Of a DNA stretch of 64,000 nucleotides, positions 1,303 through 63,299 are shown piece by piece. Below the pieces are notes generated by a model that was not told where the DNA came from, made no database searches, and saw only the letters and a list, made by a program, of their open reading frames with translations. Position 1 is the stretch's first letter, and each line of letters begins with the position of its first letter. The DNA is taken from positions 157,423 to 221,422 of the IMG/VR virus record IMGVR_UViG_3300024054_000362; one strand, 5' to 3'. The position numbers and the translations under genes were made by a program.

Positions 1303-1575
1303 TTGTGTATAGTCGAGAACAAGATGATTGCCGCGATCGAGCTACCAGACAAGCTGTGCGTGATCCGTTGGGTAGGTCGTGAACGTCTTCACGTAGCCGT
1401 AGTAACCGTCTGTGGCACCAAAATGAACGTCGACAGAGGCGTAGTGCAAGTACCGGACTTCGTTCTCGATGGTCGGCCCGTCATGAGCTTCTCCGACTTC
1501 GACGGCCAGGGCCGTCGTCCGCTCAAGATCTGCGAAACCTGCAAGAACGCGATCGCGGCTGCGATCAAGGGCTGA
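1303..1575 (+). CDS. hypothetical protein
   Basis: ORF with C-terminal CxxC; start uncertain. Confidence 0.4.
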   Translation: MCIVENKMIAAIELPDKLCVIRWVGRERLHVAVVTVCGTKMNVDRGVVQVPDFVLDGRPVMSFSDFDGQGRRPLKICETCKNAIAAAIKG

Positions 1576-2320
1576 CGCGCGGGTTCAGTAGTCGATCGCG
1601 CAGCGCCAGTTGCTTGGCGGCGCGAAGCGCTAGGGCGCTGATGCCGATGACGGCGACGAGGCCGAGTGTGCCGATGGCCAACTTGGTGTTGGGCGACATG
1701 CCTGCGATCGGTGTCGGGGTTGCGGTCGTCAGGACTGCGTTGGCGAGCTGAGGGCCTGCATTCGCGGCACCGGCCACGGTGAAATGAACGCCGTCGGAGG
1801 TGTGCTCAGCGTCGCGTGTCAGGTTGCGTGCATCGATCGTGTGATCGACACCGAAGACGTTTTGCATCACCTGCAACAGGGTCGGTGCCCCTTGCGTGTA
1901 ATGGTCGTTTGTGTACGACGGTGGCCCGATCGCGAAGACCTCTGCTCCCATCGCGCGATACGCATCGCGGATCTTCGTCATCGCGTTCGTAGTTTGTGCA
2001 AGCGCGGCAGCCGTCAGGCCTTGATCGATATCGTTCGTACCGAGCATGACGATGACCTTGCTCGGACGAAACGTACGGTCGCTTGCGAGAAGGCCCGCGC
2101 TGTCTTCGTTTGAGAAGAAGCTCTGTGCCGAGCGACCGACGCGCGCATCGATGCGGACAGCTTGCGCGCCACCGTTGAGCAACTGCTGACCTACGATCTC
2201 GCCGGGCGCCGACGACGCCGTAACACGTTTGGCGAGATCGACGATCGTCGGGCCGCTATCGCTGCCTGGATGCGACAAGCTGTCGCCGAAGATGATGATG
2301 CGTTCACCGACGACGTTCAC
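1565..2320 (-). CDS. SGNH/GDSL hydrolase with C-terminal TM anchor
   Basis: FGDSL, VMLGTND and DGVHF blocks; GTG at 2320 with GGAGG; C-terminal hydrophobic helix and basic tail. Confidence 0.85.
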   Translation of the reverse strand: MNVVGERIIIFGDSLSHPGSDSGPTIVDLAKRVTASSAPGEIVGQQLLNGGAQAVRIDARVGRSAQSFFSNEDSAGLLASDRTFRPSKVIVMLGTNDIDQGLTAAALAQTTNAMTKIRDAYRAMGAEVFAIGPPSYTNDHYTQGAPTLLQVMQNVFGVDHTIDARNLTRDAEHTSDGVHFTVAGAANAGPQLANAVLTTATPTPIAGMSPNTKLAIGTLGLVAVIGISALALRAAKQLALRDRLLNPRVSP

Positions 2321-3272
2321 GGCGCCTCCCACGCAACACCGCCGTGGTGGCGAACTTTTTTGCGAGACGGATAGCACCGTAACCAAGGCCGACGAAGCCG
2401 CCTACGAGAAGGAGGCCCGCAAGAAACTGTCGACCGCTCGTTTGTGCGGGCTGCCCAGGTACGTTTGTGCAGATCGGCAGACTGGCGGACCAAACTGGAC
2501 GCAGGCTTTGCGCAATGATGCCGTTGGCGTCGTAGACCGGATTGCCGAAGACCTTGCGAGCGCGTTCGATCAGTTGCTGACCTTCGAACGAATTTGCGTC
2601 CAAACCAAGCTTTCGAAACTGCGCCGTCTTCCAGTGATCGACACCGGGAATTGGCCCAACCCAGTAACTGCCGCCCGACTGCGTGCAACCTGTCCGTTTT
2701 TTGCCGAATGCCTCACACAAAACTCGTTCCATCGGAACCGGGAAGAACGCGCGAAACTCAAGGCCGTCCTGATCGTCGGCGCCGAGGTTGATGTTCTCGC
2801 TCTTGCCGCTCATGACGAGATCGGCGAGTAGAGTTGTCAGAACGCTTGGATCGCGACTTGTTGCTGCGAAGCGGTTGCCGATGTTGCCGTGACCGGGAAC
2901 GTTGATCTCGCCGTAGAGTTTGGACGGCTGTGTAAACAGGAGCAGGCCGTTGACGTCCGTCTTGCGGCGCGCGGCCTGGTTGACGGCGACCTCGCCGACG
3001 GCGACACGTTCTTCGACGGTGCCGTCACCGACCTCGCTGTGCATATAGCGCGCGAGCGTATACGTCAACAGTGTGAGCGGCTTGTCAGCAGGCCAGAAGC
3101 CAGATGCTTGGAGCTGTTTCTCCGCGCTCGCACGCATGGCTTCCGGGTCGCAGCGAATCTCTCCTAGCTCGTCGGTACGACAGCCCGAATTCAGGATTCG
3201 AAGATCGGCGGGACCACCGCGCATCGGCGCGAACTTCGGGTGCCACGTCGGGTAGCAATCAAGCACGGCCAT
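2304..3272 (-). CDS. SleB/Hydrolase_2-like cell-wall hydrolase with C-terminal TM anchor
   Basis: TLARYMHSEVGDGTVEERVAVGEVAVN resembles the SleB catalytic Glu helix; ends TM + VLRGRRRERRR. Confidence 0.65.
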   Translation of the reverse strand: MAVLDCYPTWHPKFAPMRGGPADLRILNSGCRTDELGEIRCDPEAMRASAEKQLQASGFWPADKPLTLLTYTLARYMHSEVGDGTVEERVAVGEVAVNQAARRKTDVNGLLLFTQPSKLYGEINVPGHGNIGNRFAATSRDPSVLTTLLADLVMSGKSENINLGADDQDGLEFRAFFPVPMERVLCEAFGKKRTGCTQSGGSYWVGPIPGVDHWKTAQFRKLGLDANSFEGQQLIERARKVFGNPVYDANGIIAQSLRPVWSASLPICTNVPGQPAQTSGRQFLAGLLLVGGFVGLGYGAIRLAKKFATTAVLRGRRRERRR

Positions 3273-3957
3273 AGCGCCTCCGTCGACCAAGCGTCATCGC
3301 GGCGCCTTTGGCGAAGCGCAGTGCGAGCCAGCTGAGTCCAACGAGTGTACCGAGCGCAGCGACGCCGACGAAGAAATCGCGTGTCGCGTGGCTTGTCTCT
3401 TGAACGGTGACCGCCGTCTGAGGACGATCGCGGAACAGCGGAATGCCGAGTGTCTTCGCGTTCGCGACCACCGATGCCGAATAACCGTCGACAGGGAGCC
3501 ACGGCTCGGCGGGGATTCCAACGCCGAAACCGAAATCAGAGAAGAAGCCCGTCGACGGCTTGCCAACGGCCTGTACGACAGCTGCGGTCAACGATTGCGG
3601 CACGAACAGATCGAAGTGGAGATGCGGTCCACCAGAGAGACCCGTCGAGCCTGAAAGGCCAATCTGTTGGCCCTTGGTGACCGCTTGACCTTGAGAGATC
3701 TGTGCTTGCGAAAGGTGCAGGTAGCGCGAGACGACGCCATCGGCGTGTGTGAGCGCGATGAAGATGCCAGCATCACTAGAGTCGGTTGGGACGACGCGCG
3801 TTGCAACGCCGTCAGCTGCAGCAAGGATCGGTGTCCCGACGGCCAACGGAATGTCAAGCGCGGGATGAAGTCCGGTCGCGCGCTGCGACCAACCGTCCAG
3901 CACTGTCAACGTGACGTTGCTGGGGGCGACGCGACCGAGATCGGGATCGAAAGCCAT
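3259..3957 (-). CDS. M23 metallopeptidase with C-terminal TM anchor
   Basis: HPALD (HxxxD), GTPILAAADG, YLHLS, GPHLHF (HxH); ends TM + TLGRRRRYGRA. Confidence 0.9.
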   Translation of the reverse strand: MAFDPDLGRVAPSNVTLTVLDGWSQRATGLHPALDIPLAVGTPILAAADGVATRVVPTDSSDAGIFIALTHADGVVSRYLHLSQAQISQGQAVTKGQQIGLSGSTGLSGGPHLHFDLFVPQSLTAAVVQAVGKPSTGFFSDFGFGVGIPAEPWLPVDGYSASVVANAKTLGIPLFRDRPQTAVTVQETSHATRDFFVGVAALGTLVGLSWLALRFAKGAAMTLGRRRRYGRA

Positions 3958-3958
3958 T

Positions 3959-4597
3959 TCATGCTCGACGACGGAAGTACTTGGGCGTGCGGTGGTTGCG
4001 ACTGAAGCGACGGCGGCCGAATCCTGCCCGATGCTTGGGTTTGCCGAAACCTTGAGCAATCGCAATCGTCGGCGTGATGATGGGGAACAAGGCTCCGAAG
4101 ATACCCCAGACGATCGCCCAGCCCACGCTGTCGTTGCGTTTGTAGCCGTGATAGACGCTCGCCGCGAACGACGCCGTTGCGAGGACGCTCCAGATTATAC
4201 GAACGGGCGTTGGTAGTCGCTTGAAGATCGTCGTGATACCGTTCGCCTTGGCAAGTGCCGCGTTGATCTGATTCGCCTGCGCGCCAAGCTTCACGGCACG
4301 CAGAGCGACATCAGAGCGATCACTGGCGTCGGGGATTGTCTGAAGAACCGCAACGGCTTGATCGAAGTTTTCAGTAGTCCCGAACTGTGTAATCAGGTCC
4401 AAAAGTCGTTTCGCGAGCGTATTCTTGTCGTCTTCGGTAAGCGCTCCTAAACCATTGAAGTGAACATCACCGTCGGGCGGCAGATCCCACGGGACTTTCT
4501 GAATGCTTCCGCCCCCGCCGGTGACGAAGACCGTCTCGTGCGGATGGACGGGGTAGAGGGTCTCGATACCAAGGGGCGTCGACACGGCGGCGAGCAT
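3959..4597 (-). CDS. membrane protein (MLA leader, GLG motif, two TMs, Arg tail)
   Basis: MLAAVSTPLG...NGLGA; two hydrophobic helices; AGFGRRRFSR tail. Confidence 0.7.
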   Translation of the reverse strand: MLAAVSTPLGIETLYPVHPHETVFVTGGGGSIQKVPWDLPPDGDVHFNGLGALTEDDKNTLAKRLLDLITQFGTTENFDQAVAVLQTIPDASDRSDVALRAVKLGAQANQINAALAKANGITTIFKRLPTPVRIIWSVLATASFAASVYHGYKRNDSVGWAIVWGIFGALFPIITPTIAIAQGFGKPKHRAGFGRRRFSRNHRTPKYFRRRA

Positions 4598-4630
4598 GTT
4601 GCCTCAATCCTACACCGGAAACAGCACCTT

Positions 4631-4646
4631 GATCGCGCGAACGATC
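4631..4646. promoter_or_regulatory. GATCGC-N4-RCGATC palindrome
   Basis: GATCGCGCGAACGATC between divergent genes. Confidence 0.6.
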
Positions 4647-4664
4647 GCGCAGTAAGGTCCCGCG

Positions 4665-4919
4665 ATGCCACGAGGTAAGAAGCCGGACACCGACGAAGCG
4701 TGGGGATTCTACGGCGGTCCGCCGCACGAAGAGGGACGTTCGGCGCGAGCGCTCGCCGAGCTGGTTCGCAACACGAAGCTACGCACGCTGCACGACATGT
4801 CCGAACGTGAGATCCGTGCGCTGGAACGCTTCTACGGCTGTCCTGTGATCAGACCGGCTAGACTGCCGAAATCGTCGCGTCAACGCAACCGCGCTGTCCT
4901 CGCGGCTCTCGTAGCTTGA
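4665..4919 (+). CDS. hypothetical protein
   Basis: ORF immediately downstream of the palindrome. Confidence 0.45.
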   Translation: MPRGKKPDTDEAWGFYGGPPHEEGRSARALAELVRNTKLRTLHDMSEREIRALERFYGCPVIRPARLPKSSRQRNRAVLAALVA

Positions 4920-5188
4920 ACTAGACGCGGGCTGTCGCGTCGTAGCTCGCGGGCCATTGCGTGATCACCGCGTCGCTCGGCACCACGCGCGAGTGCTTCG
5001 ATGACTCGTGCGTGGAGTCGATCGGCCGAGGGGCTCGGCAAACGCAGCTGCAAAAAGATCGTCGATCGTGGGGTCGGACGGGACTGTTTGGGAGGCATAC
5101 CTGACGTATCGAGCGTCTCAGGGATGGGTCAGGATCTACTTGATCTAGGCCCCAGAACCGGCTAGATCCTCGAAAATACGCTCAAATT

Positions 5189-5227
5189 CGCCCTAGGAAA
5201 TCGCATACTTACAAGTTACTCTCGACA
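5189..5227 (+). promoter_or_regulatory. conserved ~40-bp upstream element, copy 1
   Basis: CGCCCTAGGAAATCGCATACTTACAAGTTACTCTCGACA; related copy at 62582-62620. Confidence 0.55.
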
Positions 5228-5327
5228 AGTCTGAATAAACTGGTGATCTGAGGCGTCGTTCCTGGCAGAGTTGCCAAGTAGCTCTCGCTATTTTAATCCA
5301 CGGCGATTCGCCGCTTCGGAGGATACC

Positions 5328-5774
5328 ATGTCGGCAGGGCAGATTACGGACGGCGCGCAGGCACGCAAGTTCATCTTGGGCGGTAACGCGCGGGTGACCC
5401 TCGTCTCCCAAAGGACGGGCACACGGTTCACGTTCCGTGTCAAGGCGAAGGACATCCCCAAGGCGGGCGCGCCCGAGGCCCCGTGGTTTGTCTCGCTGCT
5501 GCGCGGCCCGGAGAACACCACGGACTACACGTTTCTGGGGACGATCTTCGAGGACCAGACCACATACCGTCACGGGCGTAAGTCGACCGTCTCGGACGGG
5601 GCGCCGAGCGCCAAGGGCTGGGCGTGGGCCTGGTCCTTCCTGGCGAAGGGCGAACTGCCGCCGGGCTGCGAAGTCTGGCACGAGGGCCGGTGCGGCCGGT
5701 GCGGTCGGGCACTCACGGTGCCCGAGTCGATCGAGGCGGGTCTGGGTCCCGAGTGCGCCACGGCGGGGTTCTAG
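5328..5774 (+). CDS. DUF6011-like Zn-finger protein
   Basis: C-terminal GRCGRCGRALTVPESIEAGLGPEC; GGAGG RBS. Confidence 0.75.
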   Translation: MSAGQITDGAQARKFILGGNARVTLVSQRTGTRFTFRVKAKDIPKAGAPEAPWFVSLLRGPENTTDYTFLGTIFEDQTTYRHGRKSTVSDGAPSAKGWAWAWSFLAKGELPPGCEVWHEGRCGRCGRALTVPESIEAGLGPECATAGF

Positions 5775-5938
5775 TCATGTCCAAGCCCAAGTCCAACAAG
5801 AAGTGCACGTGCGAGGGCAAGCTGCTCCCTGCACGGCTCAGTCTAGCACCGCCCTCGATGATCACTGCCTTCTTCAAGAAGCGCGCGAAGCAGAACAAGC
5901 GTCGCGCCGAGCTTCGTCGTCAGAAGGGACGCTAAGCC

Positions 5939-6304
5939 GTGAAGTACTCAGTCCGCTACGTTCACAAGGTCACGCAGACGTGCAGCTGCAAGCACGTCGA
6001 GGGAAGCCACTACAGCTACGTCGCCGATGCGAAGGCGCCGAACGGTCTGCAATGGACCCGCGGCAAGTGCACCGTGCGTGACTGTCGTTGTGAGGGCTAC
6101 GAGCCCGACGTCGAGCACCACGATCTGCCAGACGGCGTGCCGGGCGATCGCAACGCGGTTACCAAGATCCTGTGCGAGCACCGGCTGCTCAGCGGTGGCC
6201 AGAAGCTGCAGGAAGTCCGTCGCAACAACGCCGGCCAGGTCGTGTGCTTCCTCAAGAACAGCACGTTTCACTCGATCATCCTCACCCGCTCGAAGGGAGC
6301 CTGA
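5939..6304 (+). CDS. hypothetical Cys/His-rich protein
   Basis: CSCKH...C..CRC; in operon. Confidence 0.55.
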   Translation: MKYSVRYVHKVTQTCSCKHVEGSHYSYVADAKAPNGLQWTRGKCTVRDCRCEGYEPDVEHHDLPDGVPGDRNAVTKILCEHRLLSGGQKLQEVRRNNAGQVVCFLKNSTFHSIILTRSKGA

Positions 6305-6306
6305 AC

Positions 6307-7500
6307 ATGAAGATCACGTCTTTCACGCTCGGCGGCGCGTTCGGCATCGACGCGATTCCGGTCTACATCACGTGCACTGTCGACGCCGATCGGCTCGATG
6401 CGTTCAAGATCACCGGTGTATCGCCGGTGCGCGCCAAGGAAATCGAGGTGCGTGTTCGTTCTGCGATCACGTCAGTCGGGCTGTGCGCGTGGCCAGTCGG
6501 TCAGGTGACGGTCGATGTCGATACCCGAGGCGCCAAGTTCCCTTCGGCAGCGCTCGATCTGCCGGTTGCTTGTGCGATCGCGGGCGTGAACGTCGACGGA
6601 CTGCTCGTCGCGGGCGAGCTTGGACTCGACGGGCGCACGCGTCCCGTGCGCGGCATCGTGCAGGCGACGCTCCTCGCCAAGAGCCTCGGGCTGCGCGGCG
6701 TGCTGATTCCTGCCGACAACGAACGTGACGCGAAGGAAACGATCGGCGATGCGATCGACGTCTATGTGCTCTCGCATCTCGTCGACTTGAACGGCGACAT
6801 CGACGTTCTGAAGCTCGAATACACGGTGCGAACGTCGCGCACGAGGGCGACGTGTGACTTCTCCGAAGTCCGTGGACAGTCGGATGCGGTCTTGGCAATT
6901 GCAAACGCAGTCCGCACGCGCAGCAACGTGCTCCTGTCAGGACCGCCGGGCGTCGGAAAGACCATGATCGCGCGCCGGATCCCAACGGTGCTCTCCGCGA
7001 TGACCAAGGACGAACAGATCGACGTGACGGAAGCCTACAGCGCGGTCGGCATGTCCGACGGGCTCGTGACCGAGCGTCCGTTTCGCGCTCCGCACCATAC
7101 GGTCTCGGTTTCTGCCTTGACGGGCGGCGGGATCGCGCCGCGTCCGGGCGAGGTTCAACTCGCAACCCACGGCGTGCTGTTCCTCGACGAAGTCGACCAG
7201 TTCTCGCGCGGCGCGATCGATGGTCTGGTCTCGACGCTGAATGCGATGCCGGTGGCGTCGCGGCCCCTCGTGGTCGCAGCTGCGAACCCCTGCCCGTGCG
7301 GCTGGCACGGTTCGACGGTGCGTCCCTGTGCGTGTTCCCCGGGGTCGATCAAGCGGCACGAGACGCGGGTCAACGAAGTGGCCGGGAAGTTGCGCCTGAC
7401 GGTTCGTGTGGAGCTGCAGCATGTGGATCTCGCCCAGCTTCGTACGGCGCCGGTCGGCGAGTCGAGCGCGACGATTGCCGCCCGAATCGCCGGCTGCTAG
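6307..7500 (+). CDS. YifB/ComM-like AAA+ ATPase, shortened
   Basis: ALDLPVA, GELGLDG, GPPGVGKT, PFRAPHHT, GVLFLDE, AAANPCPCG; C-terminal domain absent. Confidence 0.85.
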   Translation: MKITSFTLGGAFGIDAIPVYITCTVDADRLDAFKITGVSPVRAKEIEVRVRSAITSVGLCAWPVGQVTVDVDTRGAKFPSAALDLPVACAIAGVNVDGLLVAGELGLDGRTRPVRGIVQATLLAKSLGLRGVLIPADNERDAKETIGDAIDVYVLSHLVDLNGDIDVLKLEYTVRTSRTRATCDFSEVRGQSDAVLAIANAVRTRSNVLLSGPPGVGKTMIARRIPTVLSAMTKDEQIDVTEAYSAVGMSDGLVTERPFRAPHHTVSVSALTGGGIAPRPGEVQLATHGVLFLDEVDQFSRGAIDGLVSTLNAMPVASRPLVVAAANPCPCGWHGSTVRPCACSPGSIKRHETRVNEVAGKLRLTVRVELQHVDLAQLRTAPVGESSATIAARIAGC

Positions 7501-7739
7501 ATTTACTCTCGCTTTGTTGAATAAGATGCCTTCCTCAGGCGTCTACTGTCATGAAAGACAGAAGAATGAGCGACGAGAACAACGACAAAGCTCCCTGGGC
7601 AGACGACGTGTGGCGTGCCATCTGGGCCCGAATCACGACGCGGCGTGAATGGCGTCGAAAGCGTAACGAGCGTCGCGTACAGCGTCGCCTTTGCGCGTTT
7701 GCTGAACCCTTCAAAGCTGAAGGGAAAGGATAGAAATCG

Positions 7740-8294
7740 ATGCGCGAGCGAGCAGTCGGTGGGTACGAGCCGGATGACGTCGAACAGCGTGAGCTGGTCG
7801 AGCTGTGGCACCTCTCGCGGGGGATGGCGCCGTTCAGTGTCGAGCTGCTTTCGAAGCACGGCACGCCGCGCGGCGTCCGAATCGCGTGGGTGGTCGATGA
7901 GTACATGAAGCAGCACGAGGGCAAGCCGAACGTCAAGCGCAAGTGGATCTACGTCTGGTGTGAGGCTGCACTCGGTCACTTGGTCGATCGCACGGTCACC
8001 GAGGTCGACTCACGCGGGCGCGGCGGCGTGGTCGCCGCTCAGCAGTGGATGTCGTGCTGCACGCATCACGCGACCGGTGGACCGACAACGGTCGCGTGCT
8101 CCGACGAAGTCTGGCACCGCCGCGCGCGAGTTCGCGTCCACGGTGGTGAAGTCACCGTCGGCGTGACTCGTATCTCGGACGTCGTGCCGCGCGATGATCT
8201 CAAGGTCTGCAAGGAGTGCAAGCTGCCGCGCCTCATGCACGGCACGCCGATGACCAACTGTACTGCGATGACGTCGTCACCGAGGAGCAAGTGA
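7740..8294 (+). CDS. hypothetical protein
   Basis: ORF in plus-strand run. Confidence 0.5.
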   Translation: MRERAVGGYEPDDVEQRELVELWHLSRGMAPFSVELLSKHGTPRGVRIAWVVDEYMKQHEGKPNVKRKWIYVWCEAALGHLVDRTVTEVDSRGRGGVVAAQQWMSCCTHHATGGPTTVACSDEVWHRRARVRVHGGEVTVGVTRISDVVPRDDLKVCKECKLPRLMHGTPMTNCTAMTSSPRSK

Positions 8295-8496
8295 TGCGAG
8301 GCCGACGGAAGCAGTCACCACCGCCTCCCCAGTCACCGCCTTTCCAAAAGGGTATTACGGCGTGGCTTGCAGCGAAGACGCAGATGGATACGGACGGACT
8401 TACCGTTAATCTATTTCGTCAAGTCGCGAAATGTATGTACGCGGAGTTGGCGGAGGAAGTTTCACCTACGCTCGGTGGCCGTCAACGTTGGCGGCA

Positions 8497-9084
8497 TCAC
8501 CCGACGCTTCGAACAGCGGCGCTTCGTGCGAGGCGCAACGCGAGCCAACTGAGTCCGACGACGCTCCCGACTACAACTAGACCGGCGGCGACCTTTGCAC
8601 CCGTCGATGACGTCGGCGGCGCGGCTGGCTTCACGAGCGCGAGTTGATCTTTCAACCACTGGTTTGGATCGATCGTGTTCGGTGGGATGACCCCAAGACG
8701 TTGCTTGCGGACCTCCCAGTGCGTGTGCCCAGTGGCCGCGTCGAATTTCGCGAGGAGCGTGCCCTCAAGCACCGTCTGACCAGGACGCACCGTGATCGAA
8801 TTGAAATCGAGATGCGAGAGCAGGTGGAAGAAGCCACTCTTGCCCTGCATTAGTACAACGCCGGGACCGTAGCCGACAAACGGCGCTGAGTTGCCGTCGG
8901 CAACATCGATGACGGTACCGTCCTCGGGTGCGAACACCTGCGGCGCGGTCGCGAACATGTCGACCCCGAAGTGCTGACACGGGAACGTCCCGATGCCGCA
9001 CGAGCCGTCGGCAGGCGTTTGTCGAACGCACCCGAAGCAACCCGTCCGGTGCGTGTCGAACGGTCCGGTCGGGAAGCGCGCCAC
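8497..9084 (-). CDS. M23 metallopeptidase, second copy, with C-terminal TM anchor
   Basis: HFGVD, FAPEDG, LSHL, HTHWE; TM segment GLSWLALR shared with the 3259-3957 protein. Confidence 0.85.
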   Translation of the reverse strand: MARFPTGPFDTHRTGCFGCVRQTPADGSCGIGTFPCQHFGVDMFATAPQVFAPEDGTVIDVADGNSAPFVGYGPGVVLMQGKSGFFHLLSHLDFNSITVRPGQTVLEGTLLAKFDAATGHTHWEVRKQRLGVIPPNTIDPNQWLKDQLALVKPAAPPTSSTGAKVAAGLVVVGSVVGLSWLALRLARSAAVRSVG

Positions 9085-9085
9085 G

Positions 9086-9700
9086 TTACGCCGCCCTGCG
9101 ACGACGCGCCATCACGACGCCGACGGTGATCGAAGCCGCAACGATCGCGCCTGTGATCACGAGTGCGAAGAAGCGCTTGGGAGGCGATGGCGTCGCATCG
9201 GCGAGCATCATCTTCTTGCGCCGGGGGATTACAACCACGCCGACGCGGTCACGGAACTGCCAGCGCTGATCGAATTCGCGGCGTGAGATCGTGCGACGAT
9301 TGCCGCGAACGTTCGGGTCCATAACGACCACGTTGGTCGGCTTCACCTTGGTGGCGACGACGAAGTGGCCTTGGCCTGGACGTGTGAAGCTGCGGATCGC
9401 TACGATCACTGGAACATCGCTGTTGGTGTACGACCCCAACTCGTCGATGTTGCTGAAGCGCCGTGTCTGTGCGAAGTAGTTGCGTCGACGGGCGGCCATC
9501 GTGACCTGCCATGCCGTGGAGCCCGCCTTGGGATCGATGCCGATTTCGCGGATCAGAGTCGACTCGTCGACGTGATCGCCCCAGTGTCCCATCACCGCCT
9601 TGAGTGCGGCGGCACCGCACGAGTATGGCTGGATCTGTTGGTAGGGCGCTACCTCACCCAACCCAGCATCACCAAGACCTTGGGATTGTAGTGCCAACAT
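9086..9700 (-). CDS. C39-family cysteine peptidase with C-terminal TM anchor
   Basis: QQIQPYSCGAAAL (Q, C), GHFVV (H), VMDP (D); stand-alone, no ABC transporter; starts MLALQSQGLGDAGLG. Confidence 0.85.
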   Translation of the reverse strand: MLALQSQGLGDAGLGEVAPYQQIQPYSCGAAALKAVMGHWGDHVDESTLIREIGIDPKAGSTAWQVTMAARRRNYFAQTRRFSNIDELGSYTNSDVPVIVAIRSFTRPGQGHFVVATKVKPTNVVVMDPNVRGNRRTISRREFDQRWQFRDRVGVVVIPRRKKMMLADATPSPPKRFFALVITGAIVAASITVGVVMARRRRAA

Positions 9701-9732: not shown

Positions 9733-10308
9733 GTGCCGCGCCACGTGATCACCGCGCCGGACGATCCTCCGACGATGACCTGTCCTTCGGGACCGATGGT
9801 CTATCTCGCAGGCCCGATCCAGGGCTCGGCGAACTGGCAGATGGAGGCGATCCAAATTCTTGATGATCTGGCGCCTGAGCTTCACGTCGCGTCGCCGCGG
9901 GCGAAGGACTTCAAGGGTGGCGCCGAGAGGTTTCTTGCGTGGGAGCAGCAGGCACTTGTTCGTGCGGCGGCGGACGGCGTCGTGTTGTTCTGGTTGGCGA
10001 AGGAGACCAAGCATCACTGCAGTCGACCGTATGCTGCGAACGCACGCTTCGAACTGGGCGAGCTGGCCGTGAAGGCGGCCACAGGTCTTTTGTGCGTCGT
10101 CGTTGGAATCGAACAAGGTTTCCCGGGCGGGAAGTACTTGCAGCGTCGGTTGACACTCTCGTACCCACAGATTCCGATCTGTCGAACACTTCGTCAGACG
10201 TGTGCGGTTGCGGCCGAGCGTGCTTGCGTCGACACGCTCTCAGCGGCGCTTCCACGATCGTTGGCCGAGCTGTTCGTGGTGCCGTCGTTCGGCCGGAACA
10301 ACGGTTAG
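9733..10308 (+). CDS. nucleoside 2-deoxyribosyltransferase-like protein
   Basis: VYLAGPIQG..WQ, WE..AL, VVLFW, RFELGE; start uncertain. Confidence 0.7.
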   Translation: MPRHVITAPDDPPTMTCPSGPMVYLAGPIQGSANWQMEAIQILDDLAPELHVASPRAKDFKGGAERFLAWEQQALVRAAADGVVLFWLAKETKHHCSRPYAANARFELGELAVKAATGLLCVVVGIEQGFPGGKYLQRRLTLSYPQIPICRTLRQTCAVAAERACVDTLSAALPRSLAELFVVPSFGRNNG

Positions 10309-10997: not shown

Positions 10998-11013
10998 GAT
11001 CGCGCGAGCGATC
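10998..11013. promoter_or_regulatory. GATCGC-N4-RCGATC palindrome
   Basis: GATCGCGCGAGCGATC, followed after 5 nt by TACCGT. Confidence 0.7.
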
Positions 11014-12336: not shown

Positions 12337-12519
12337 ATGTTAGCGATGACGTTTAGTGGTCCGCGTGGCGGACACGGTGGAGGGCACGGTGGTGGCGGAC
12401 ATGGCGGTGGACACGGCGGTGGCGGTTTCCGTCGCGGCGGCGGTTTTCGTCGCGGCGGTGGATGGTGGCCCAACTACTACGGCTACGGTCCTGAGGTTGT
12501 AGTCCTCCCGCCCGTATAG
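12337..12519 (+). CDS. Gly/His-rich small protein with MLA start
   Basis: GGGH and RRGGG repeats; AGGAGG RBS. Confidence 0.55.
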   Translation: MLAMTFSGPRGGHGGGHGGGGHGGGHGGGGFRRGGGFRRGGGWWPNYYGYGPEVVVLPPV

Positions 12520-16212: not shown

Positions 16213-16228
16213 GATCGCGCGAGCGATC
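16213..16228. promoter_or_regulatory. GATCGC-N4-RCGATC palindrome
   Basis: GATCGCGCGAGCGATC; on minus strand followed after 5 nt by TAGCTT. Confidence 0.7.
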
Positions 16229-16927: not shown

Positions 16928-16943
16928 GATCGCGCGAGCGATC
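16928..16943. promoter_or_regulatory. GATCGC-N4-RCGATC palindrome
   Basis: GATCGCGCGAGCGATC; on minus strand followed after 5 nt by TAGGCT. Confidence 0.7.
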
Positions 16944-17906: not shown

Positions 17907-18344
17907 TTAGCGTCCTGCGGTGCGGTTCTTGGTGCGGCCCGCGTAGCGGTAGAGCGCGACGCCGAACACTGCGAGCGCACCACCGACGGCGAGCGCGCCA
18001 CCGGCGACGAGCATGTTCGAAACCGTCGGGCTCTGGTTCGCGAGGAACGAGTCGATGCCGCCGAACTGACGTCGGTAGGGGATCACGGTCTGGCCTCCGT
18101 TGATGGACGTGAAGTAGCTGGGGTCGCAGTAGTCGCAGACAGGTCCGCGTGCGGGGTAGCGGCGGCGGTACATCTGCGGCGTGCCGCCGGGGCCGTAGAC
18201 CGGTGTCGCGACGCGGGTCGGTCCGACGATGGCCTGATGTGGCGCGAGCGGCTGACCAGCCGATGGAAAAGACACCGTGGGCTCGTCGCGCAGCCCTGCG
18301 AGCTGCGCGTCACTGAGACCTTCCAAGGTGAATACGTGGGGCAC
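17907..18344 (-). CDS. membrane protein with C-terminal TM and basic tail
   Basis: QFGG followed by hydrophobic helix and RYAGRTKNR. Confidence 0.6.
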   Translation of the reverse strand: MPHVFTLEGLSDAQLAGLRDEPTVSFPSAGQPLAPHQAIVGPTRVATPVYGPGGTPQMYRRRYPARGPVCDYCDPSYFTSINGGQTVIPYRRQFGGIDSFLANQSPTVSNMLVAGGALAVGGALAVFGVALYRYAGRTKNRTAGR

Positions 18345-18375: not shown

Positions 18376-18391
18376 GATCGCGTGCGCGATC
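18376..18391. promoter_or_regulatory. GATCGC-N4-RCGATC palindrome
   Basis: GATCGCGTGCGCGATC; on minus strand followed after 4 nt by TAGGTT. Confidence 0.65.
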
Positions 18392-18934: not shown

Positions 18935-20308
18935 TCAGTGAAGAGAGTAGTTGACGATCTCACCGGGAGCGATCCAACAAGCGCGACAGCCCTTGCCGTC
19001 CGGTCCGCCGAGACCTGGCGGTGCTACGGCTTTGCGACACGTGTGCTTCGCGTCTTCGGTCGCATACGCTTGGCAGTTCCACGTGTAGCGAGGATCGGGA
19101 CCCGTCATCTTCGGCTCGAAGCGTTGGGCATGTTGATAGACGTACTGCTCGCGCTCCGGCGTCATGCCGCGGTTCTGTTCGACTTGCAGTACGACCGTCG
19201 CGCCCGCCCAGCCAGGACCGAGATGCTGTCCGACGGGGTCGTAGCCTTCGATGCGACGATTCCAGCCGGGACCGGGTTCGTTCACTTCGTACGCGCTCGG
19301 TCGGATGATGAAGTTGCGCGGATCGCGGTTGATGTCATTGACCGCGTCGGTACCCCATTCGGTCGCCCAGATGCGCGACGGCGCCCAGAACGTGATGTCA
19401 GGAAGGCGATCTGCGATCATCTTCCACTGCTGCAGGTATTCAGGTTCGAAGAAGTCGCCCGAGTCGTGGATCCGAAAGAAGCGCCGACCGGTCGGTTCAG
19501 ATGGCAGCGCTTGCGTCTTCTCGACGACCTTCTCTTCACCGGTCTCGGTGTTGACGATCTTCACCTCTTCCTTCACCGTGCCGCCGTTCAGCTTGTAGTC
19601 CGCGTTGTTGATCGCGTAGACCATTGTCTCGACGAACGCGGTCGACGGTCCGTACGGGCCTTGAACATTGAACTTGATCGCTTGCCGCGCCCACAGGAAC
19701 CGAAGGATCTGCGCGAACTGCACTTGGCCCGTCGAGTACTGTCCACCCTGCGCGTAACAGAACTGGCAGATGGCCTGCGCCAGGTTGACAGGCGCGTTGT
19801 ACGGTCGACCGAGACCGTAGTTGACGTACTTCGCTGCTTTGCGCAGTGCATCTGCGGGAACGAGGCTTTGTCCAGCGACCGCACCAGGGCACGCGCCACC
19901 GACTTGCGGCGGTCCTGCAGGGATGCTCCACGACGGCGTGTTCATCTTCGACGTCCATGACAGAAGTTGGTACTGCTGGACGTTGGGGTTGGTTGCAGGA
20001 TTCCACGCCGGGCCAGGCCCGATCGGCTGATCGAGCACGACGTAGACGTTGCTCGGATCCTTGCCGTGCACGTTGCCGGGACGGACGACAAACTGCTTGG
20101 TCTCCAGACTACGGATGACGGCGTCACGTACGAACATCATGCCGAGCAGCCCAGCATGCGCATCCGCGAGAACAGCACTGGGCGCAGGACAGGCCGGATG
20201 ATCCTCACCGAGGTACGCGCCGTTCATCGACCCGACGCACATATCGTACGCACGTTCGATGGCGGTGACGTCTTCGGTGACTTCGAGGTGCGGAATGATG
20301 GCTGCCAT
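18935..20308 (-). CDS. Gp88-like protein (radical-SAM-related Fe-S protein)
   Basis: SKM..PSWSIPAG, ACPGA, ICQFCYA, FRIHDSGDF, FWAPSR. Confidence 0.7.
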   Translation of the reverse strand: MAAIIPHLEVTEDVTAIERAYDMCVGSMNGAYLGEDHPACPAPSAVLADAHAGLLGMMFVRDAVIRSLETKQFVVRPGNVHGKDPSNVYVVLDQPIGPGPAWNPATNPNVQQYQLLSWTSKMNTPSWSIPAGPPQVGGACPGAVAGQSLVPADALRKAAKYVNYGLGRPYNAPVNLAQAICQFCYAQGGQYSTGQVQFAQILRFLWARQAIKFNVQGPYGPSTAFVETMVYAINNADYKLNGGTVKEEVKIVNTETGEEKVVEKTQALPSEPTGRRFFRIHDSGDFFEPEYLQQWKMIADRLPDITFWAPSRIWATEWGTDAVNDINRDPRNFIIRPSAYEVNEPGPGWNRRIEGYDPVGQHLGPGWAGATVVLQVEQNRGMTPEREQYVYQHAQRFEPKMTGPDPRYTWNCQAYATEDAKHTCRKAVAPPGLGGPDGKGCRACWIAPGEIVNYSLH

Positions 20309-27657: not shown

Positions 27658-30600
27658 TCAGTTGACTTCCGCCCAAGTTTTTCCGGCCTTGGCGTCGACG
27701 GGAAAATTCATCTTGTTGCCGTTGTACTCGACCTCGCGCGTGAAGCACTTCACGACGAGGGCCTTGAGCAGATCCTGATCGTCTTCGTCGCACTCGAAGA
27801 CTACGGCATCGTGGATCTGAAGGATCGGCCACGCGCCCTCGGGCAGGAGCGGCATGATATCCGCGAGCCCCAGGTTGATAAGGTCAGCGCCCGACGCCTG
27901 AATCGGGAAGTTGACGACTTCGGTCAGGTCGAACTGCTTGATCGGAAAACATCGACGACGTCCGAGGATCATGCTTCGGATCTCGCCTTGCTGATCCGCC
28001 ATCCGTTGCATGTCCTGGTGCCACTTGGTGACGCCCGGCATGCGGGTCTTCATCACCTGCACCATCTTGCCGATCATGCCGATGGTGACCTGCGGGTAGT
28101 CGCGGACGACGGCCTTCCACAACGTCTCGATCGAGCCGGCGTAGAACGCGCCGTACTCCGGGCGCTTGATCAGGTCGCGGCGGACCTTGCGTTCGTCGAC
28201 AGGAACCGTGTCGAAGTCCGGCCAGACGATGCGCGCGAACTCGCTATGGATGTCCTTGTCCTTGTGGAAGATGTCGAGGAGGAACGGGTCACCTGACATG
28301 AGCGCGATCAGGCGTGCTTCGAGTTGCTTCGCATCGAAAGCGACGAACGCACGCCCGTACGGTGCGACCACCTGGCTACGGAGGTTGGGGCGTCCCTTCT
28401 TTTTGTCGGCCTTGGGCCAGTTCTGTGCTTGTGGTCCTTCGGAGCGCCATCGTCCAGTGATGGCGTGGACGCTCCATCGTGGGTGAACACGCAGCCACGG
28501 ATCGGCGAAGCCGTAACGGATCTTGCCGGGGATCGGTCGGCCTTCCTTGTCGAGGACCGGGCGATCGAGCATGCGTTCACAGAACGTCGACAGGAGCTTT
28601 GCGTTCTCGCGGTAGTTGAGGAGCGCTTGGATTTCCGGGTACTGCGAGAACGCTTCGAGGACGTCTTTCTTTGTCGAGATTCGACCACTGGCCGTCTGAA
28701 GACTGAGCGGCACACCGCAGGCCTTGAGGAAGGCCACGATGTGATCGCCCGAGTCGATCATGAAGTTGAACTTGCTAGCCTCGATCTCGCCGAGGCGTTT
28801 CGAAATACGTTCGTCAAGATCGATCGGATCGTGCTTTCGCGTACGCCGCGCCTGTTCGAAGGCGAGCCGTTCCTTGAAGCGCGCCAGGATCGTCGGATCC
28901 TGAATTTTGTCGTCCAGCTCTTTTTTGGCCGCATCGATGTTGGCGCGGAAGCCTTTGCGGAGTTGCCCGTTGATTTCTGGATCGATCGGGACGCCCTTCA
29001 TGTGCATCACGCTGGCGGCGTGCGCCATCGCGAGATCCACCTTGTAGGTCTTCTCGGCGTTCGACTCCTTGATGATGAGCGCGATCGGACCTTCGATACG
29101 TGCCGTCGCAAGCGTGTCGCGTGCGTTGTAGGGCAGCAGCTCGTCGAGCGTTCCTTGACCATGGCGGTATTCGGCCTTCCACGGCGGAGCGGCGTAGAAC
29201 TGCGTCAGGACACGCTGAAGGTTGTGTGCGAGGCCTGGGAACGCACTGTGATGCATGAGCATCGTGCAGTGGATTTCGCCGTTGATCTGAAAACCGTGAC
29301 GTTCCAAGACAGGTACGTCGTAGATCCGGTTGTGGAAGATCTTGACGACGGACTCGTCGGCGAACAGTTTGTCGAGCGGTTCGAGAACCTCCGGGATGCA
29401 CAGCTCCCACGCGATGCTGATCGCGCGCTCGAACGTGGCGAGCCCGAGCGCCGACATGTTGGCGTTGTAAGGTGAGAGCGCGGTGTGTTGCTTCGTGTTT
29501 TCGACGAAGGTCTCGGTGTCACACGCGAACCGACCTGAACGGTATGCGTCGACGACGAAGTCGGCGACGAGCTTCTTCGCCCGCTGCCAATCTTCTAGTT
29601 CGACCTGAATGTCGTCGGTGAACTTGATGTCGGCGCCCTGCGAGATCAGGTTCACCTTGGCCGTGTCGTAGAGCAGGTTCCAGAAGGCGAGGTCGACCGT
29701 GTGTGACCCACCACCGCCACTCGCACCGCCGCCACGAAGGATCGCAGCGGGGTGAATGCTCGGGATCACCGCACGCGTCCGTCCGCTGTTGTCGCAGTCG
29801 ACCTCGTGGTACGAGCCCGCCATCTGCGTGATCGAGAACTTCTCGTTGCCAGTGAGTTGTTGGGCGGCGTGAGCCCCGAGGGCGAGGACGGGCACGCCGG
29901 GGAACTGTGCGATCTCTTGTTTGAGTCGGTCGCCACAAGCTTGACGTGCTTGCTTCTTGATGGCGTCGGAGGCGCCGTGCGGCGGTTGGCAGTTGTGAAC
30001 GACGGCTCCGGGCGTGAGGAAGTTGTGCGTGCCTTCCACTTCGAGGCAGTACACGGTCGCGCCTTCGCCTTTTCGTCGGGGGCTCGTACAGACGCTCTCG
30101 GCCTGATCGTAAAAGGCCGCTGCTGGAATGGGCTCGTATGTTTGCGGGTCGTACTTGCCGCGATCTTCAGGTCGAAGTTTGTACGCCATCACAGGTGGAA
30201 CGTAAGTCGCGATCGCAGCACTGAATCGCGCAGTCCCTTCGACCGTGAATCGGATACGGCCGCGCCGAACGCGGTTTTCGAAACCGCGTGCACGTAGTAC
30301 TGCAGAGGCGTGAAGAAGATCTGGTTCGGGAAAGGCGACGCCACAAATCTCGGCGAGCGGACGGTGCCCGTTGCGGATCTGCATGTACCCATCGTCTAGG
30401 TACCAGACGGCAAACAACAGCTCGTCCGCCGAAGCGAGAACAGTCGATGGGATTCGTTTCTTGCCTTCGGGGTAGAAGAGGTCGCGTGTTGCATGTCCCC
30501 ATGCACCGGCAGCTGTACGGAACCCGTACTTAGCTTGCTCATTTTGTCGGGGTGGCTGTTGGAACAGTGACACGCCGAATTTTTTCAACACGCGCGCCTT

Positions 30601-60277: not shown

Positions 60278-60430
60278 CGTCGAGTGATCTCGCCGCGGTT
60301 CGTTCGCATCATAGGCTTGACTTGTCAGGTACATCTGCGAAACGTTCAGTTCCAGTAGAGAACGGCTTGACTCGTCGAAGTCGTGCGTGAGAGGTTCAGT
60401 TCGAGTAGAGCGCGACAATTTAGGGAGCAC

Positions 60431-62536: not shown

Positions 62537-62581
62537 GTGGCTGGTCTTCCGAGCAGGTTCGCAGGGAAAGTAGGCTAGGTA

Positions 62582-62620
62582 CGCCTTAAAAATCAAGGAC
62601 TTACGAGTTTACTCTCGACA
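62582..62620 (+). promoter_or_regulatory. conserved ~40-bp upstream element, copy 2
   Basis: CGCCTTAAAAATCAAGGACTTACGAGTTTACTCTCGACA upstream of cas5. Confidence 0.55.
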
Positions 62621-62663
62621 GAACGGACGCCTCGCGCGTCGTAGACAACAACAGGGAGAGCAC

Positions 62664-63299
62664 ATGAAACGGAGCAGTGTACTTGCACTACGCGCAATGG
62701 GGCGGCGCGCGTGTTGGACGAACCATCTTTGTCGTGTCGAACGACAGACATACGACATTCCTACGCCGTCTGGCGCTGTAGGGGTGTTCGAAGCTGTCAA
62801 TTGGCATCCCGGAATGCATTGGGAGCTGCACAAAATCTGGGTACTCAAGCCCATTCAGCACTTTTCACTGCGCACGAACGAGGTGAAGTGTTTCGCAGGC
62901 CGCCAGCCAATCAACATCGACAGCAATCGGACGCAGCGCAATACCGTCGGGCTCTACGACGTCGACTACATCTTCGAGGCCAGCTTCGTACTGGACGCGC
63001 GTGCGTCTCACGACGTCGCGACCAACGAAGACATCTTTCGTCGGCGCGTCAAGAACGGTGCCTGCTATCACACGCCGTATCTGGGGATGCACCCCTTTAT
63101 CTGTGACGTGATGGCGCCGCCTGCCCAGTATACGCCGATTCGCCTGAGTCGGAGTTTTGGGCGAATGTTGTACGGGTTCGACTACACGAATAAGAAGCCG
63201 ACGCCGCTCTACTTCGAAGCCTCGATGGAGAACGGTGTCGTGCAGATCCCTTCGCGTGAATACGTTCTTCAGAACCAAGGGATCAACCATGTTCCGTGA
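62664..63299 (+). CDS. cas5: type I-C Cas5 (Cas5d/Cas5c)
   Basis: ACWT...VERQTYDIPTPS, W.P, VLKPI, RTNEV, RTQR..L.DVDY, PYLG, GRMLY. Confidence 0.92.
   Translation: MKRSSVLALRAMGRRACWTNHLCRVERQTYDIPTPSGAVGVFEAVNWHPGMHWELHKIWVLKPIQHFSLRTNEVKCFAGRQPINIDSNRTQRNTVGLYDVDYIFEASFVLDARASHDVATNEDIFRRRVKNGACYHTPYLGMHPFICDVMAPPAQYTPIRLSRSFGRMLYGFDYTNKKPTPLYFEASMENGVVQIPSREYVLQNQGINHVP

Follow-up and report, generated by a model that had tools for sequence, protein, structure and literature searches.

Results

Genes at the locus

The analyzed window is a stretch of 64,000 nucleotides (positions 157,423 to 221,422 of IMG/VR record IMGVR_UViG_3300024054_000362) from the 221-kb genome of an uncultured, unclassified jumbo virus from lake water. 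This genome is designated G000 below, and related genomes have similar designations (G001, G004 etc.). The window encodes five predicted cell wall-cutting enzymes, each of which ends in a membrane anchor. All five are on the minus strand. The features are as follows (window coordinates):

1565..2320, minus strand: SGNH/GDSL esterase with a Thr/Pro linker, one C-terminal transmembrane (TM) segment and a basic tail; the longest ORF reaches 2386, but the real start is probably GTG at 2320, behind a GGGAGG site and overlapping the end of the SleB-like gene
2304..3272, minus strand: 322-aa SleB-fold putative lytic transglycosylase with a linker, one C-terminal TM and the tail RLAKKFATTAVLRGRRRERRR
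3259..3957, minus strand: M23a, an M23 metallo-endopeptidase with a linker, one C-terminal TM and the tail RFAKGAAMTLGRRRRYGRA; the longest ORF reaches 4065, but the likely start is ATG at 3957, one base after the upstream stop codon
3959..4597, minus strand: 212-aa protein with two TM helices and a basic tail, the first gene of the operon; it could be holin-like or a membrane scaffold
4631..4646, no strand assigned: one-mismatch copy (GATCGCGCGAACGATC) of a 16-bp quasi-palindromic motif in the 67-nt gap directly upstream of the four-gene operon, a probable promoter or operator
8497..9084, minus strand: M23b, a second and divergent M23 peptidase that starts one base after the C39 stop codon; its anchor contains GLSWLALR
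9086..9700, minus strand: C39 (papain-like, double-glycine type) cysteine peptidase with a Pro-rich linker, one C-terminal TM and the tail MARRRRAA
16227..16871, minus strand: a further tail-anchored protein of the same class (214 aa, tail +10); exact motif copies lie at 16213-16228 and 16928-16943
17907..18344, minus strand: a further tail-anchored protein (145 aa); a two-mismatch motif copy lies at 18376-18391

The observation made in the first-pass annotation, a set of five enzymes each with a catalytic domain, a Pro/Thr linker, a single TM and a basic tail but no obvious signal peptide, is confirmed. It did not include the 212-aa protein that heads the operon, the homology of the SGNH and SleB-like anchors to the M23 anchors, or the genome-wide spread of the layout.

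Catalytic domains

The SGNH protein has the conserved blocks GDSL (residue 34), GTND (116) and DGVH (198). Its Pfam scores exceed the gathering cutoffs (PF13472, Lipase_GDSL_2, 33.1 bits against 32.9; PF00657, 27.6 against 23.6). Both M23 proteins have the zinc ligands HxxxD and HxH (HPALD and HLH in M23a, HFGVD and HTH in M23b) and score 80.8 bits (E 8e-23) and 40.4 bits (E 3e-10), respectively, against a cutoff of 28.7. The C39 protein scores 60.6 bits against 22 (PF03412, E 2e-16) and contains QQIQPYSCG (QxxxxxxCG) and GHF. It is not the N-terminal domain of an ABC exporter acting on a double-glycine leader peptide: it is a stand-alone 204-aa protein with a C-terminal TM, and no transporter gene is adjacent. 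Among 58 homologues, 55 have the same build, with a C-terminal TM and an RRR tail.

The 322-aa protein matches no Pfam family at E ≤ 0.01, so it is not a sequence-level member of SleB/Hydrolase_2 (PF07486), and a profile search against PDB sequences found nothing relevant. Its catalytic domain has a SleB-like fold. Compared with SleB, a spore-cortex lytic transglycosylase (PDB 4fet, 4f55; 12% identity), the viral protein has about 50 extra N-terminal and 60 extra C-terminal residues and a membrane anchor in place of the N-terminal PG-binding domain of SleB; its substrate is not known. Residue E80 (SEVG) is invariant in 79 sequences, but in the absence of a residue-level superposition this leaves undecided whether it corresponds to the catalytic glutamate of SleB. 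A sub-clade of the SleB-like family carries the anchor at the N-terminus.

The 212-aa protein has no Pfam or PHROG match. Its orthologues occur in G001 (49% identity, same position), G007 and G004. An anchored orthologue of M23a occurs in G009, and anchored orthologues of the SGNH esterase occur in G001, G008 and G010. Homologues of the 214-aa protein occur in G001 and G004.

Tail anchors

The membrane layout, for which topology prediction had been suggested in advance as a check, was examined by hydropathy. Each of the five enzymes has a Pro/Thr/Ala-rich linker, one strong C-terminal hydrophobic segment (Kyte-Doolittle 19-residue mean 2.0–2.4) and a basic tail with a net charge of +3 to +9. 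None has an N-terminal hydrophobic h-region. As was also pointed out in the first-pass annotation, GLSWLALR is shared exactly by the two M23 proteins. Their catalytic domains are not detectably similar by BLASTP, and the best segment between them is the anchor. Four of the five enzymes (both M23 proteins, the SleB-like protein and the SGNH esterase) carry a homologous anchor, G-[LI]-S-x-L-A-L-R-x-A-[KR].

Five of the six wall-hydrolase-domain proteins in the genome carry the anchor, against 24 of 354 genes overall (binomial P = 8e-6), which is more than chance. In total, the genome holds 19–24 proteins of this layout, whereas in a control actinophage we found 1 of 63 ORFs. Many of the tail-anchored proteins have no enzymatic domain.

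A shared upstream motif

Sixteen of the 24 tail-anchored proteins lie in operons behind the motif GATCGCGCGAGCGATC (hypergeometric P = 4e-8). These include the operon of the 212-aa protein, M23a, the SleB-like protein and the SGNH esterase, whose orthologous operon in G001 is preceded by an exact copy. The motif also precedes the operon next to the lineage hallmark gene, a conserved 328-aa protein and fibre-like genes. However, the C39–M23b operon has no upstream motif, and in G001 the motif also precedes a holin-like gene.

A separate endolysin

A conventional soluble endolysin (GH25 + PG_binding_1) with small TM proteins upstream lies at 37.5–40.1 kb of the genome, so the anchored set is an extra system. 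The motif was not found at two mismatches or fewer upstream of this cassette in G000. The cassette of holin-like proteins and GH25 with a wall-binding domain is conserved in the lineage. In the complete 85-kb relative G007 the SleB-like gene is located between the conserved small-protein block and spike-like genes, about 8 kb from the holin-like plus GH25 cassette.

Some relatives fuse the SleB-like and GDSL domains in one protein of about 545 aa, and the two genes are adjacent in four other loci.

Search for hallmark genes of tailed phages and membrane-containing viruses

Fourteen related records, eight of them at least 90% complete, have no match at E ≤ 0.1 to five TerL Pfam families or to Phage_portal (PF03237, PF17289, PF03354, PF20441, PF04466 and PF04860). 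The 13 records other than G000 also lack an HK97 Phage_capsid match (PF05065) at E ≤ 0.01. In G000 itself capsid (PF05065) and sheath (PF04984) were searched at E ≤ 0.1, also with no match. Control searches for M23 and GDSL worked. Every G000 protein of 400 aa or more was scanned, and none is a TerL or portal. PHROG scans found no structural family, although G000 has weak tail-fibre matches. The tailed-phage hallmarks are absent by sequence only; the folds were not tested. Relatives encode tailspike-like beta-helix proteins, and ESM Atlas clusters of related proteins are labelled mostly Uroviricota.

The most conserved protein of the lineage is a jelly-roll-like beta-sandwich that weakly resembles capsid proteins of membrane-containing viruses. 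The hallmark protein has more than 437 homologue clusters, and none of 50,697 GenBank phage records holds it. In the 60–98 kb region around that gene, 21 of 59 genes have a strong TM segment, against 12.7% genome-wide. No FtsK/HerA/A32-type packaging ATPase is conserved in the lineage, so the hallmark ATPase of Varidnaviria is missing too, and no packaging ATPase of either viral realm was found.

Discussion

A proposed membrane-mounted set of wall-breaching enzymes

We suggest that the enzymes form a co-regulated, membrane-mounted wall-breaching kit that is separate from the ordinary lysis system of the virus. In this view, the SGNH esterase would strip O-acetyl groups from peptidoglycan so that the SleB-fold lytic transglycosylase can cut the glycan strands, while the two M23 peptidases and the C39/papain-like peptidase would cut the peptide cross-links. 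All five would be held on one membrane by a shared C-terminal glycine-zipper helix with an Arg-rich tail. As there is no signal peptide, the catalytic domains would stay on the cytoplasmic face of the host membrane after synthesis. The most likely reading is that such membrane patches, loaded with some 20 tail-anchored viral proteins, are taken into the particle as a virion membrane, as in PRD1 and Toil, and that on the next infection the enzymes open the wall locally for genome entry.

The domains, motifs and anchors, the homology of four of the anchors, the conservation of the layout in relatives, the SleB-like/SGNH fusions, the shared upstream motif, the separate soluble endolysin and the lack of matches to the tailed-phage hallmark families searched follow directly from our data. 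In contrast, the substrates, the topology and, above all, the assignment of the membrane to the virion are our inferences. The virion-membrane reading is plausible but unproven, and we hold it only tentatively. The evidence in its favor is circumstantial: the absence of matches to the terminase, portal, HK97 capsid and sheath families tried, the jelly-roll-like conserved protein, the co-regulation of anchored genes with a conserved, membrane-protein-rich gene block, and the precedents of PRD1 P7 and Toil gp23. There is no direct evidence for lipid or for virion association. Further points against this reading are that C-terminal-TMD endolysins are known in tailed phages (Enc34, M4Lys), that some relatives carry tailspike-like genes and G000 has weak tail-fibre matches, that ESM Atlas clusters of related proteins are labelled mostly Uroviricota, that no packaging ATPase of either viral realm was found, that the C39–M23b operon has no upstream motif, and that in G001 the motif also precedes a holin-like gene. 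Known prokaryotic membrane-containing non-tailed viruses have genomes under about 50 kb, so the prior is low.

The interpretation given in the first-pass annotation is therefore partly supported. The tail-anchored layout holds, and it does differ from that of the usual endolysin. The suggestion that the SGNH protein de-O-acetylates cell-wall polymers gains support from the gene fusions and adjacency, which match the requirement of lytic transglycosylases for a free MurNAc C6-OH. This support is genetic linkage only; the specificity of the esterase is untested. The claim that the enzymes are displayed on a virion membrane for entry has not been shown.

Comparison with known systems

The closest systems are PRD1 P7 and gp23 of the Rhodococcus tectivirus Toil, virion-membrane transglycosylases with an N-terminal lysozyme- or transglycosylase-like domain, a C-terminal TM domain and no signal peptide. 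Each is encoded alongside a separate lysis enzyme (P15 in the case of PRD1) and is proposed to open the wall at entry (PMC5773508). The SleB-like protein likewise combines a putative transglycosylase domain with a C-terminal TM. Here, however, five enzymes of four chemistries share the layout, four of them with a homologous anchor, and the transglycosylase has a SleB fold rather than the lysozyme-like domain (IPR023346) reported for Toil gp23. The genome is 221 kb against about 15–17 kb, replicates with PolA rather than a protein-primed PolB, and shows no DJR capsid protein or A32/FtsK-type ATPase. The question whether the virus has the internal membrane, jelly-roll capsid and FtsK/HerA-type ATPase of such viruses is left unanswered by our analysis.

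Enc34 ORF39, M4Lys and Siskin, endolysins of chi-like phages, also combine an N-terminal catalytic domain with a C-terminal TM domain (TMD) and lack a signal peptide; their TMD is needed for activity from within (PMC8943055, PMC7143992). Those enzymes belong to the PHA02564 all-helical lysozyme family, have a two-helix TMD and sit in the lysis cassette between holin and spanins of tailed phages. Here the folds and families differ, the anchor is a single helix with an Arg-rich tail, and the canonical cassette is elsewhere.

In Ape1-type systems, O-acetylated MurNAc blocks lytic transglycosylases until it is de-acetylated by the esterase. The genetic coupling of an SGNH esterase to a lytic transglycosylase is similar here, but it is viral, by gene adjacency or fusion, and both partners are membrane-anchored. 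A LysB-like lipid or mycolate esterase role is not excluded.

C39-type and M23 domains are standard wall-cutting modules of actinophage lysin A (PMC12821328), and SAR endolysins are membrane-tethered. LysA modules are soluble and usually fused to a glycosidase or a wall-binding domain, and SAR domains are N-terminal and releasable, whereas here each module is a separate protein with a C-terminal anchor.

Alternative explanations

The main rival, which is possible although doubtful, is that these are host-membrane-tethered accessory lysins of a very divergent tailed phage. They would sit on the inner face of the cytoplasmic membrane and attack the wall when the membrane is breached at the end of infection, or breach it themselves through their TM domains, as the holin-independent Enc34 and M4Lys endolysins do. 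Tethering would time or localize lysis, or stop the enzymes killing neighboring host cells. The holin-like form of the two-TM protein that starts the operon, the N-terminal anchors in a sub-clade of the SleB-like family, which resemble those of SAR or signal-anchor endolysins, and the tailspike-like genes of relatives are consistent with this. LysA with C39 and M23 domains plus an esterase (LysB) is the usual actinophage lysis set. On the other hand, a complete conventional cassette already exists, and in G007 the SleB-like gene is not in it. Five tethered hydrolases plus about 15 other tail-anchored proteins of unknown function in one regulon are hard to explain by lysis alone, no terminase, portal or capsid gene was found to support a tailed virion, and cytoplasm-facing tethered enzymes would reach the wall poorly.

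It is unlikely that the enzymes are ejected pilot proteins of a tailed virion, packed in the head or tail and injected so that their helices insert into the host membrane while the catalytic domains open the wall, as in T7 gp16 and T5 Pb2. Lytic transglycosylase and M23 domains are the commonest virion-associated wall hydrolases, T5 Pb2 combines membrane-inserting segments with muralytic activity, and the SleB-like gene lies beside spike genes in relatives. However, a strongly hydrophobic C-terminal TM with an RRRR tail would send the newly made protein to the host membrane rather than into a proteinaceous capsid, about 20 such proteins are too many for an ejection apparatus, and no tail, portal or capsid genes are recognizable.

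Slightly less likely still is remodelling of the infected cell envelope that serves neither entry nor exit, for example superinfection exclusion, making room for a large replication or assembly site, or changing the cell surface. The region also encodes glycosyltransferases and methyltransferases, many tail-anchored proteins lack an enzymatic domain, and the operon lies among replication-type genes in the window. But a full set of glycan-, peptide- and ester-cleaving activities looks destructive, and the catalytic domains have no export signal.

Finally, sortase, exosortase or archaeosortase sorting signals, cleaved to attach the enzymes covalently to the wall, are mimicked by the linker, TM and basic tail, and one C39 homologue is named an “LPXTG-motif cell wall-anchored protein” by JGI, but this is very improbable because no LPXTG, PEP, PGF or other conserved motif precedes the TM helices, the signal peptide that these pathways require is absent, and the conserved part (GLSxLALRxAK) lies inside and after the helix.

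Implications for the lineage

The window belongs to a widespread, wholly uncultured lineage of large bacterial viruses (85–230 kb). A more far-reaching reading, which we consider doubtful but not excluded, is that this lineage is not tailed. It would build a lipid-containing particle around a jelly-roll-type shell, and the tail-anchored hydrolases, together with some 20 other tail-anchored proteins under one promoter motif, would be its entry apparatus. That would be a new major group of membrane-containing prokaryotic viruses, several-fold larger than any that we know of.

Results

Genomic context

The window occupies the last 64 kb of a 221,422-bp IMG/VR virus record (hereafter G000), which CheckV rates as 100% complete. 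The GC content is about 61%. The record carries 13 tRNA genes and encodes a family-A DNA polymerase with an intein, ribonucleotide reductase, helicases and primases. Insertions of inteins or homing endonucleases are present in the DNA polymerase (LAGLIDADG) and in a PD-(D/E)XK nuclease (Intein_splicing + LAGLIDADG), and the small subunit of ribonucleotide reductase is 660 aa long and matches its family in two stretches (window 27658-31413, 40969-43245 and 34794-36776, all on the minus strand). Many HNH endonucleases and three endonuclease VII families occur genome-wide. Only genetic code 11 was used.

The virus carries a type I-C CRISPR-Cas system (window 60383-63999, continuing at genome 61-6215). 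A Cas3 HD domain lies at window 60383-62536, and the last ORF, 63157-63999, runs off the record end. The C-terminal part of Cas8c (genome 61-1296) and Cas7 (1381-2562) are located at the record start and are followed by an array of about 45 degenerate 36-nt repeats ending in GGATAGAAAC, with a period of 72-74 nt. The cas operon straddles the record ends, so the record is circularly permuted and probably complete.

The DNA recurs in at least 11 lake-water metagenome runs, and no RNA run holds it. A megablast search of the region against GenBank phages found no match. The host could not be fixed: relatives occur in three MAGs, two of Actinomycetes and one of Polyangiales. Neighbouring genes (window 5328-5774, 6307-7500, 9796-10308, 18935-20308 and 58408-59439) include a DUF6011 protein, a ComM-like Mg-chelatase/Lon-type ATPase, a nucleoside 2-deoxyribosyltransferase-like protein, a GP88-family protein and a PAPS-reductase-like protein. 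DUF6011 and GP88 are typical of actinobacteriophages, which hints weakly at an actinobacterial host. A small ORF at window 12337-12519 (plus strand) encodes a Gly/His-rich repeat peptide (GGHGGGHGGG...) of unknown function.

Anchored enzymes

The feature consists of six minus-strand genes in two operons:
window 4597 down to 1565, minus strand: operon A, encoding in this order a 212-aa protein with two C-terminal TM helices and a +12 tail, the M23 peptidase M23a, a 322-aa protein without a Pfam match (the SleB-like protein), and an SGNH/GDSL esterase
window 9700 down to 8497, minus strand: operon B, encoding a C39 peptidase and, one base later, the second M23 peptidase, M23b

The genes of operon A abut or overlap. 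The ATG of M23a lies one base after the upstream stop codon, and the GTG of the SGNH gene at 2320 is placed behind GGGAGG, inside the codons for the Arg-rich tail of the preceding gene. Pfam confirms GDSL, M23 (twice) and C39 above the curated cutoffs, and the catalytic motifs are intact. Each enzyme has a Pro/Thr/Ala linker, one strongly hydrophobic C-terminal segment and a net-positive tail, and none has an N-terminal signal-like segment. Thus the layout that the first-pass annotation described for these five enzymes was found to be real.

The segment GLSWLALR, which the same annotation had reported in both M23 proteins, is exact in the two. BLASTP finds no similarity between their catalytic domains, and the best segment is the anchor. 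When lined up, the anchors of SGNH, the 322-aa protein, M23a and M23b share a glycine-zipper helix that ends in G-[LI]-[SG]-x-[LG]-A-[LI]-R-x-A-[KR]. The C39 anchor is different, but 55 of 58 of its homologues keep it, with a YRRRK-type tail.

SleB-like protein

The 322-aa protein has more than 155 metagenomic homologues, none with a Pfam domain. A tblastn search with it against GenBank phages found nothing. An AlphaFold2 model built on 79 sequences is confident (pLDDT 91, pTM 0.83). We therefore treat the protein as a putative lytic transglycosylase of the SleB type, but it is not a sequence member of that family. An invariant Glu (E80, in SEVG) is a candidate catalytic residue, although it was not mapped onto SleB. 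A complex prediction for the SleB-like and SGNH catalytic domains returned a score of 0.00, which counts neither for nor against binding.

Conservation of the layout

Of 120 homologues of the SleB-like protein, 84 have a C-terminal anchor and 14 have the hydrophobic helix at the N-terminus instead. In both classes the more basic flank follows the helix. Many of the N-anchored forms are fused to a C-terminal GDSL domain, giving proteins of about 545 aa. The SleB-like and SGNH genes are adjacent in four further loci. In the 196-kb relative G001 the order 212-aa homologue, SleB-like, SGNH is kept, and both enzymes keep the R-[IV]-A-K anchor.

Anchored SGNH or M23 orthologues occur in the related records G008, G009 and G010. 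In two more, G012 and G013, SGNH variants of 607 and 535 aa have the esterase, then a TM helix, then a further C-terminal domain of 300-370 aa. These proteins therefore have domains on both sides of the membrane.

The fusion and the adjacency fit established biochemistry. O-acetylated MurNAc blocks lytic transglycosylases until an SGNH esterase such as Ape1 removes the acetyl group. The substrate of the enzymes studied here is inferred.

Tail-anchored proteins and a shared motif

Genes were called throughout the genome with our own codon-usage gene caller, and proteins were classed by hydropathy. A soluble N-domain, a single C-terminal TM and a short tail are found in 24 of 354 genes, 19 of them with a tail of +2 or more. 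The generic hydropathy class of TM proteins is noisy, since it flagged the TerL and the capsid protein of a control actinophage, and only the positional tail-anchored class was used for statistics. The control actinophage has 1 such gene of 63; this is a single control, so it carries little weight. Five of the six wall-hydrolase proteins in the genome carry the anchor (P = 8e-6). PHROG and Pfam scans of the other tail-anchored proteins found no families.

A 16-bp quasi-palindrome, GATCGCGCGAGCGATC, occurs 39 times in the genome at two mismatches or fewer, mostly between genes, and marks about 30 intergenic sites. Copies in the window include those at 4631-4646, 10998-11013, 16213-16228 and 16928-16943. 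Within the window there are 34 matches at three mismatches or fewer against 5 expected, a number reached by 0 of 100 shuffles. At several sites GTGGTA follows a few bases downstream. A scan for the sigma-70 consensus found no promoter.

Operons directly downstream of the motif hold 16 of the 24 tail-anchored genes (hypergeometric P = 4e-8). A one-mismatch copy lies 34 nt upstream of operon A, whereas operon B has no copy. The motif is conserved in G001 (40 sites), which has an exact copy upstream of its orthologous operon, and is absent from the 85-kb relatives.

A copy also lies upstream of the gene for a lineage-core 281-aa protein (genome 67097-67942, plus strand). This protein has an N-terminal TM followed by RRR and a C-terminal domain with a Cys...His pattern (CDGH) reminiscent of transglutaminase-like peptidases. 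It may be another membrane-anchored hydrolase, anchored at the opposite end.

A separate, probable lysis cassette

Outside the window, at genome 39232-40104 (plus strand), lies a conventional soluble endolysin, a GH25 muramidase with a PG_binding_1 domain. Its gene has very high codon adaptation and is preceded by small TM proteins (genome 37534 and 38709). This is probably the real lysis cassette, and it is conserved in relatives. In the complete 85.6-kb relative G007 the late region consists of a conserved block of small proteins, then the SleB-like gene on the opposite strand, then the spike-like genes, and then a holin-like gene followed by GH25. The anchored hydrolases are therefore an additional system and not the endolysin.

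Search for virion genes

Five Pfam large-terminase families, Phage_portal and Pox_A32 have no match in G000 and 13 related IMG/VR records, the terminase and portal families being searched at E <= 0.1. Eight of these 14 records are at least 90% complete and four have terminal repeats. The HK97 Phage_capsid family gave no match in the other 13 records at E <= 0.01 and none in G000 at E <= 0.1. The sheath family was searched in G000 only, at E <= 0.1, and was absent. Control searches for M23 and GDSL in the same records worked. No FtsK match over the cutoff was found in the 14 genomes, and no A32- or FtsK-type ATPase was found. The morphogenesis genes of this lineage are not recognisable by sequence.

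All G000 proteins of 400 aa or more were scanned, and none is a terminase or portal. No structural PHROG reaches E 1e-22 among 112 proteins; these were scanned as a pseudo-alignment that lists only the top families, so a weak structural hit between E 1e-5 and 1e-22 could be hidden. Two PHROG accessions, phrog_2 and phrog_9, gave no matches, but they were only presumed to be terminase families and the result is uninformative. A phmmer search with the structural proteins of Microbacterium phage IAmGroot against all ORFs of four lineage genomes found nothing. Sequence searches of the core proteins against PDB also found nothing; the large set of protein representatives was not searched. ESM Atlas comparisons showed that the 503-aa protein is a GHKL/HSP90-like ATPase and gave no lead for the 866-aa protein. 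G007 has only two canonical P-loop proteins, and both are replication or recombination proteins.

G000 shares 166 proteins with G001 and 33-39 with the 85-kb genomes. The shared set comprises replication genes and a block of small proteins. The G000 region that holds this block (60-98 kb) is rich in TM proteins: 21 of 59 genes, against 12.7% genome-wide. Relatives have tailspike-like beta-helix proteins.

The most conserved protein of the lineage (genome 72831-73580, plus strand) is 249 aa long, with 90%, 62% and 59% identity to its orthologues in the three relatives. It has more than 437 homologue clusters, on contigs of up to 232 kb, and no Pfam match, and a tblastn search found it in no GenBank phage. 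Its model is of only moderate quality (pLDDT 65) and is a beta-sandwich. The best matches are jelly-roll capsid proteins of internal-membrane viruses (SPV1 6.3, HCIV-1 5.9, HHIV-2 5.4, P23-77 VP17 5.0, PRD1 P3 4.4), but these matches are weak, and unrelated beta-sandwiches and tail or baseplate proteins score alike. A fold search of the model in the atlas returned only unnamed viral clusters, and a search of BFVD found nothing at E <= 0.001.

We therefore assign no particle type to this virus. A conventional tailed phage is not supported by sequence, and a membrane-containing particle is not shown.

Discussion

The analysis itself demonstrates a set of active-looking enzymes covering glycan, peptide and ester bonds, which have conserved membrane anchors, shared by four of the five, and are encoded apart from the standard endolysin, with a shared regulatory motif upstream of operon A. 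Everything beyond this is inference. Without a signal peptide the large N-terminal domains would stay cytoplasmic, as those of tail-anchored proteins do. The N-anchored relatives, which have acidic N-tails and basic residues after the helix, predict the same side.

Enzymes on the cytoplasmic face of the host membrane cannot reach the wall unless one of two things happens. Either the membrane is breached (lysis), or the membrane patch is taken into the particle and presented to the next host. The second case is the model of PRD1 P7 and Toil gp23 (PMC5773508). We tentatively prefer it, i.e., we regard the enzymes as an entry kit of a virion membrane, although this preference is weak. Display on a virion membrane for entry was also the interpretation of the first-pass annotation, but it is not shown that the membrane belongs to the virion. 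Lysis by enzymes tethered to the host membrane, as in Enc34 and M4Lys (PMC8943055, PMC7143992), is somewhat less likely and is itself doubtful. Ejected pilot proteins are unlikely, and envelope remodelling during infection is slightly more so. Sortase-type sorting signals are very improbable.

Single phage wall hydrolases with a C-terminal membrane anchor, such as those of PRD1 (P7) and Enc34, are known as curiosities. What is new here is a whole toolkit of an esterase, a putative transglycosylase and three peptidases, with a common anchor in all but the C39 peptidase and a shared regulatory motif upstream of operon A but not of operon B, in a layout that is kept across a large uncultured lineage. 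It gives a concrete, testable case of membrane-mounted wall degradation. It also provides a natural pairing of an inferred O-acetyl esterase with a putative lytic transglycosylase, which could be useful for enzybiotics against O-acetylated walls, and it offers a reusable anchor module. The lineage itself may be the larger finding. If the membrane proves to be part of the virion, the finding would mark an unrecognised group of large lipid-containing bacterial viruses that marker-gene classification files with the tailed phages.
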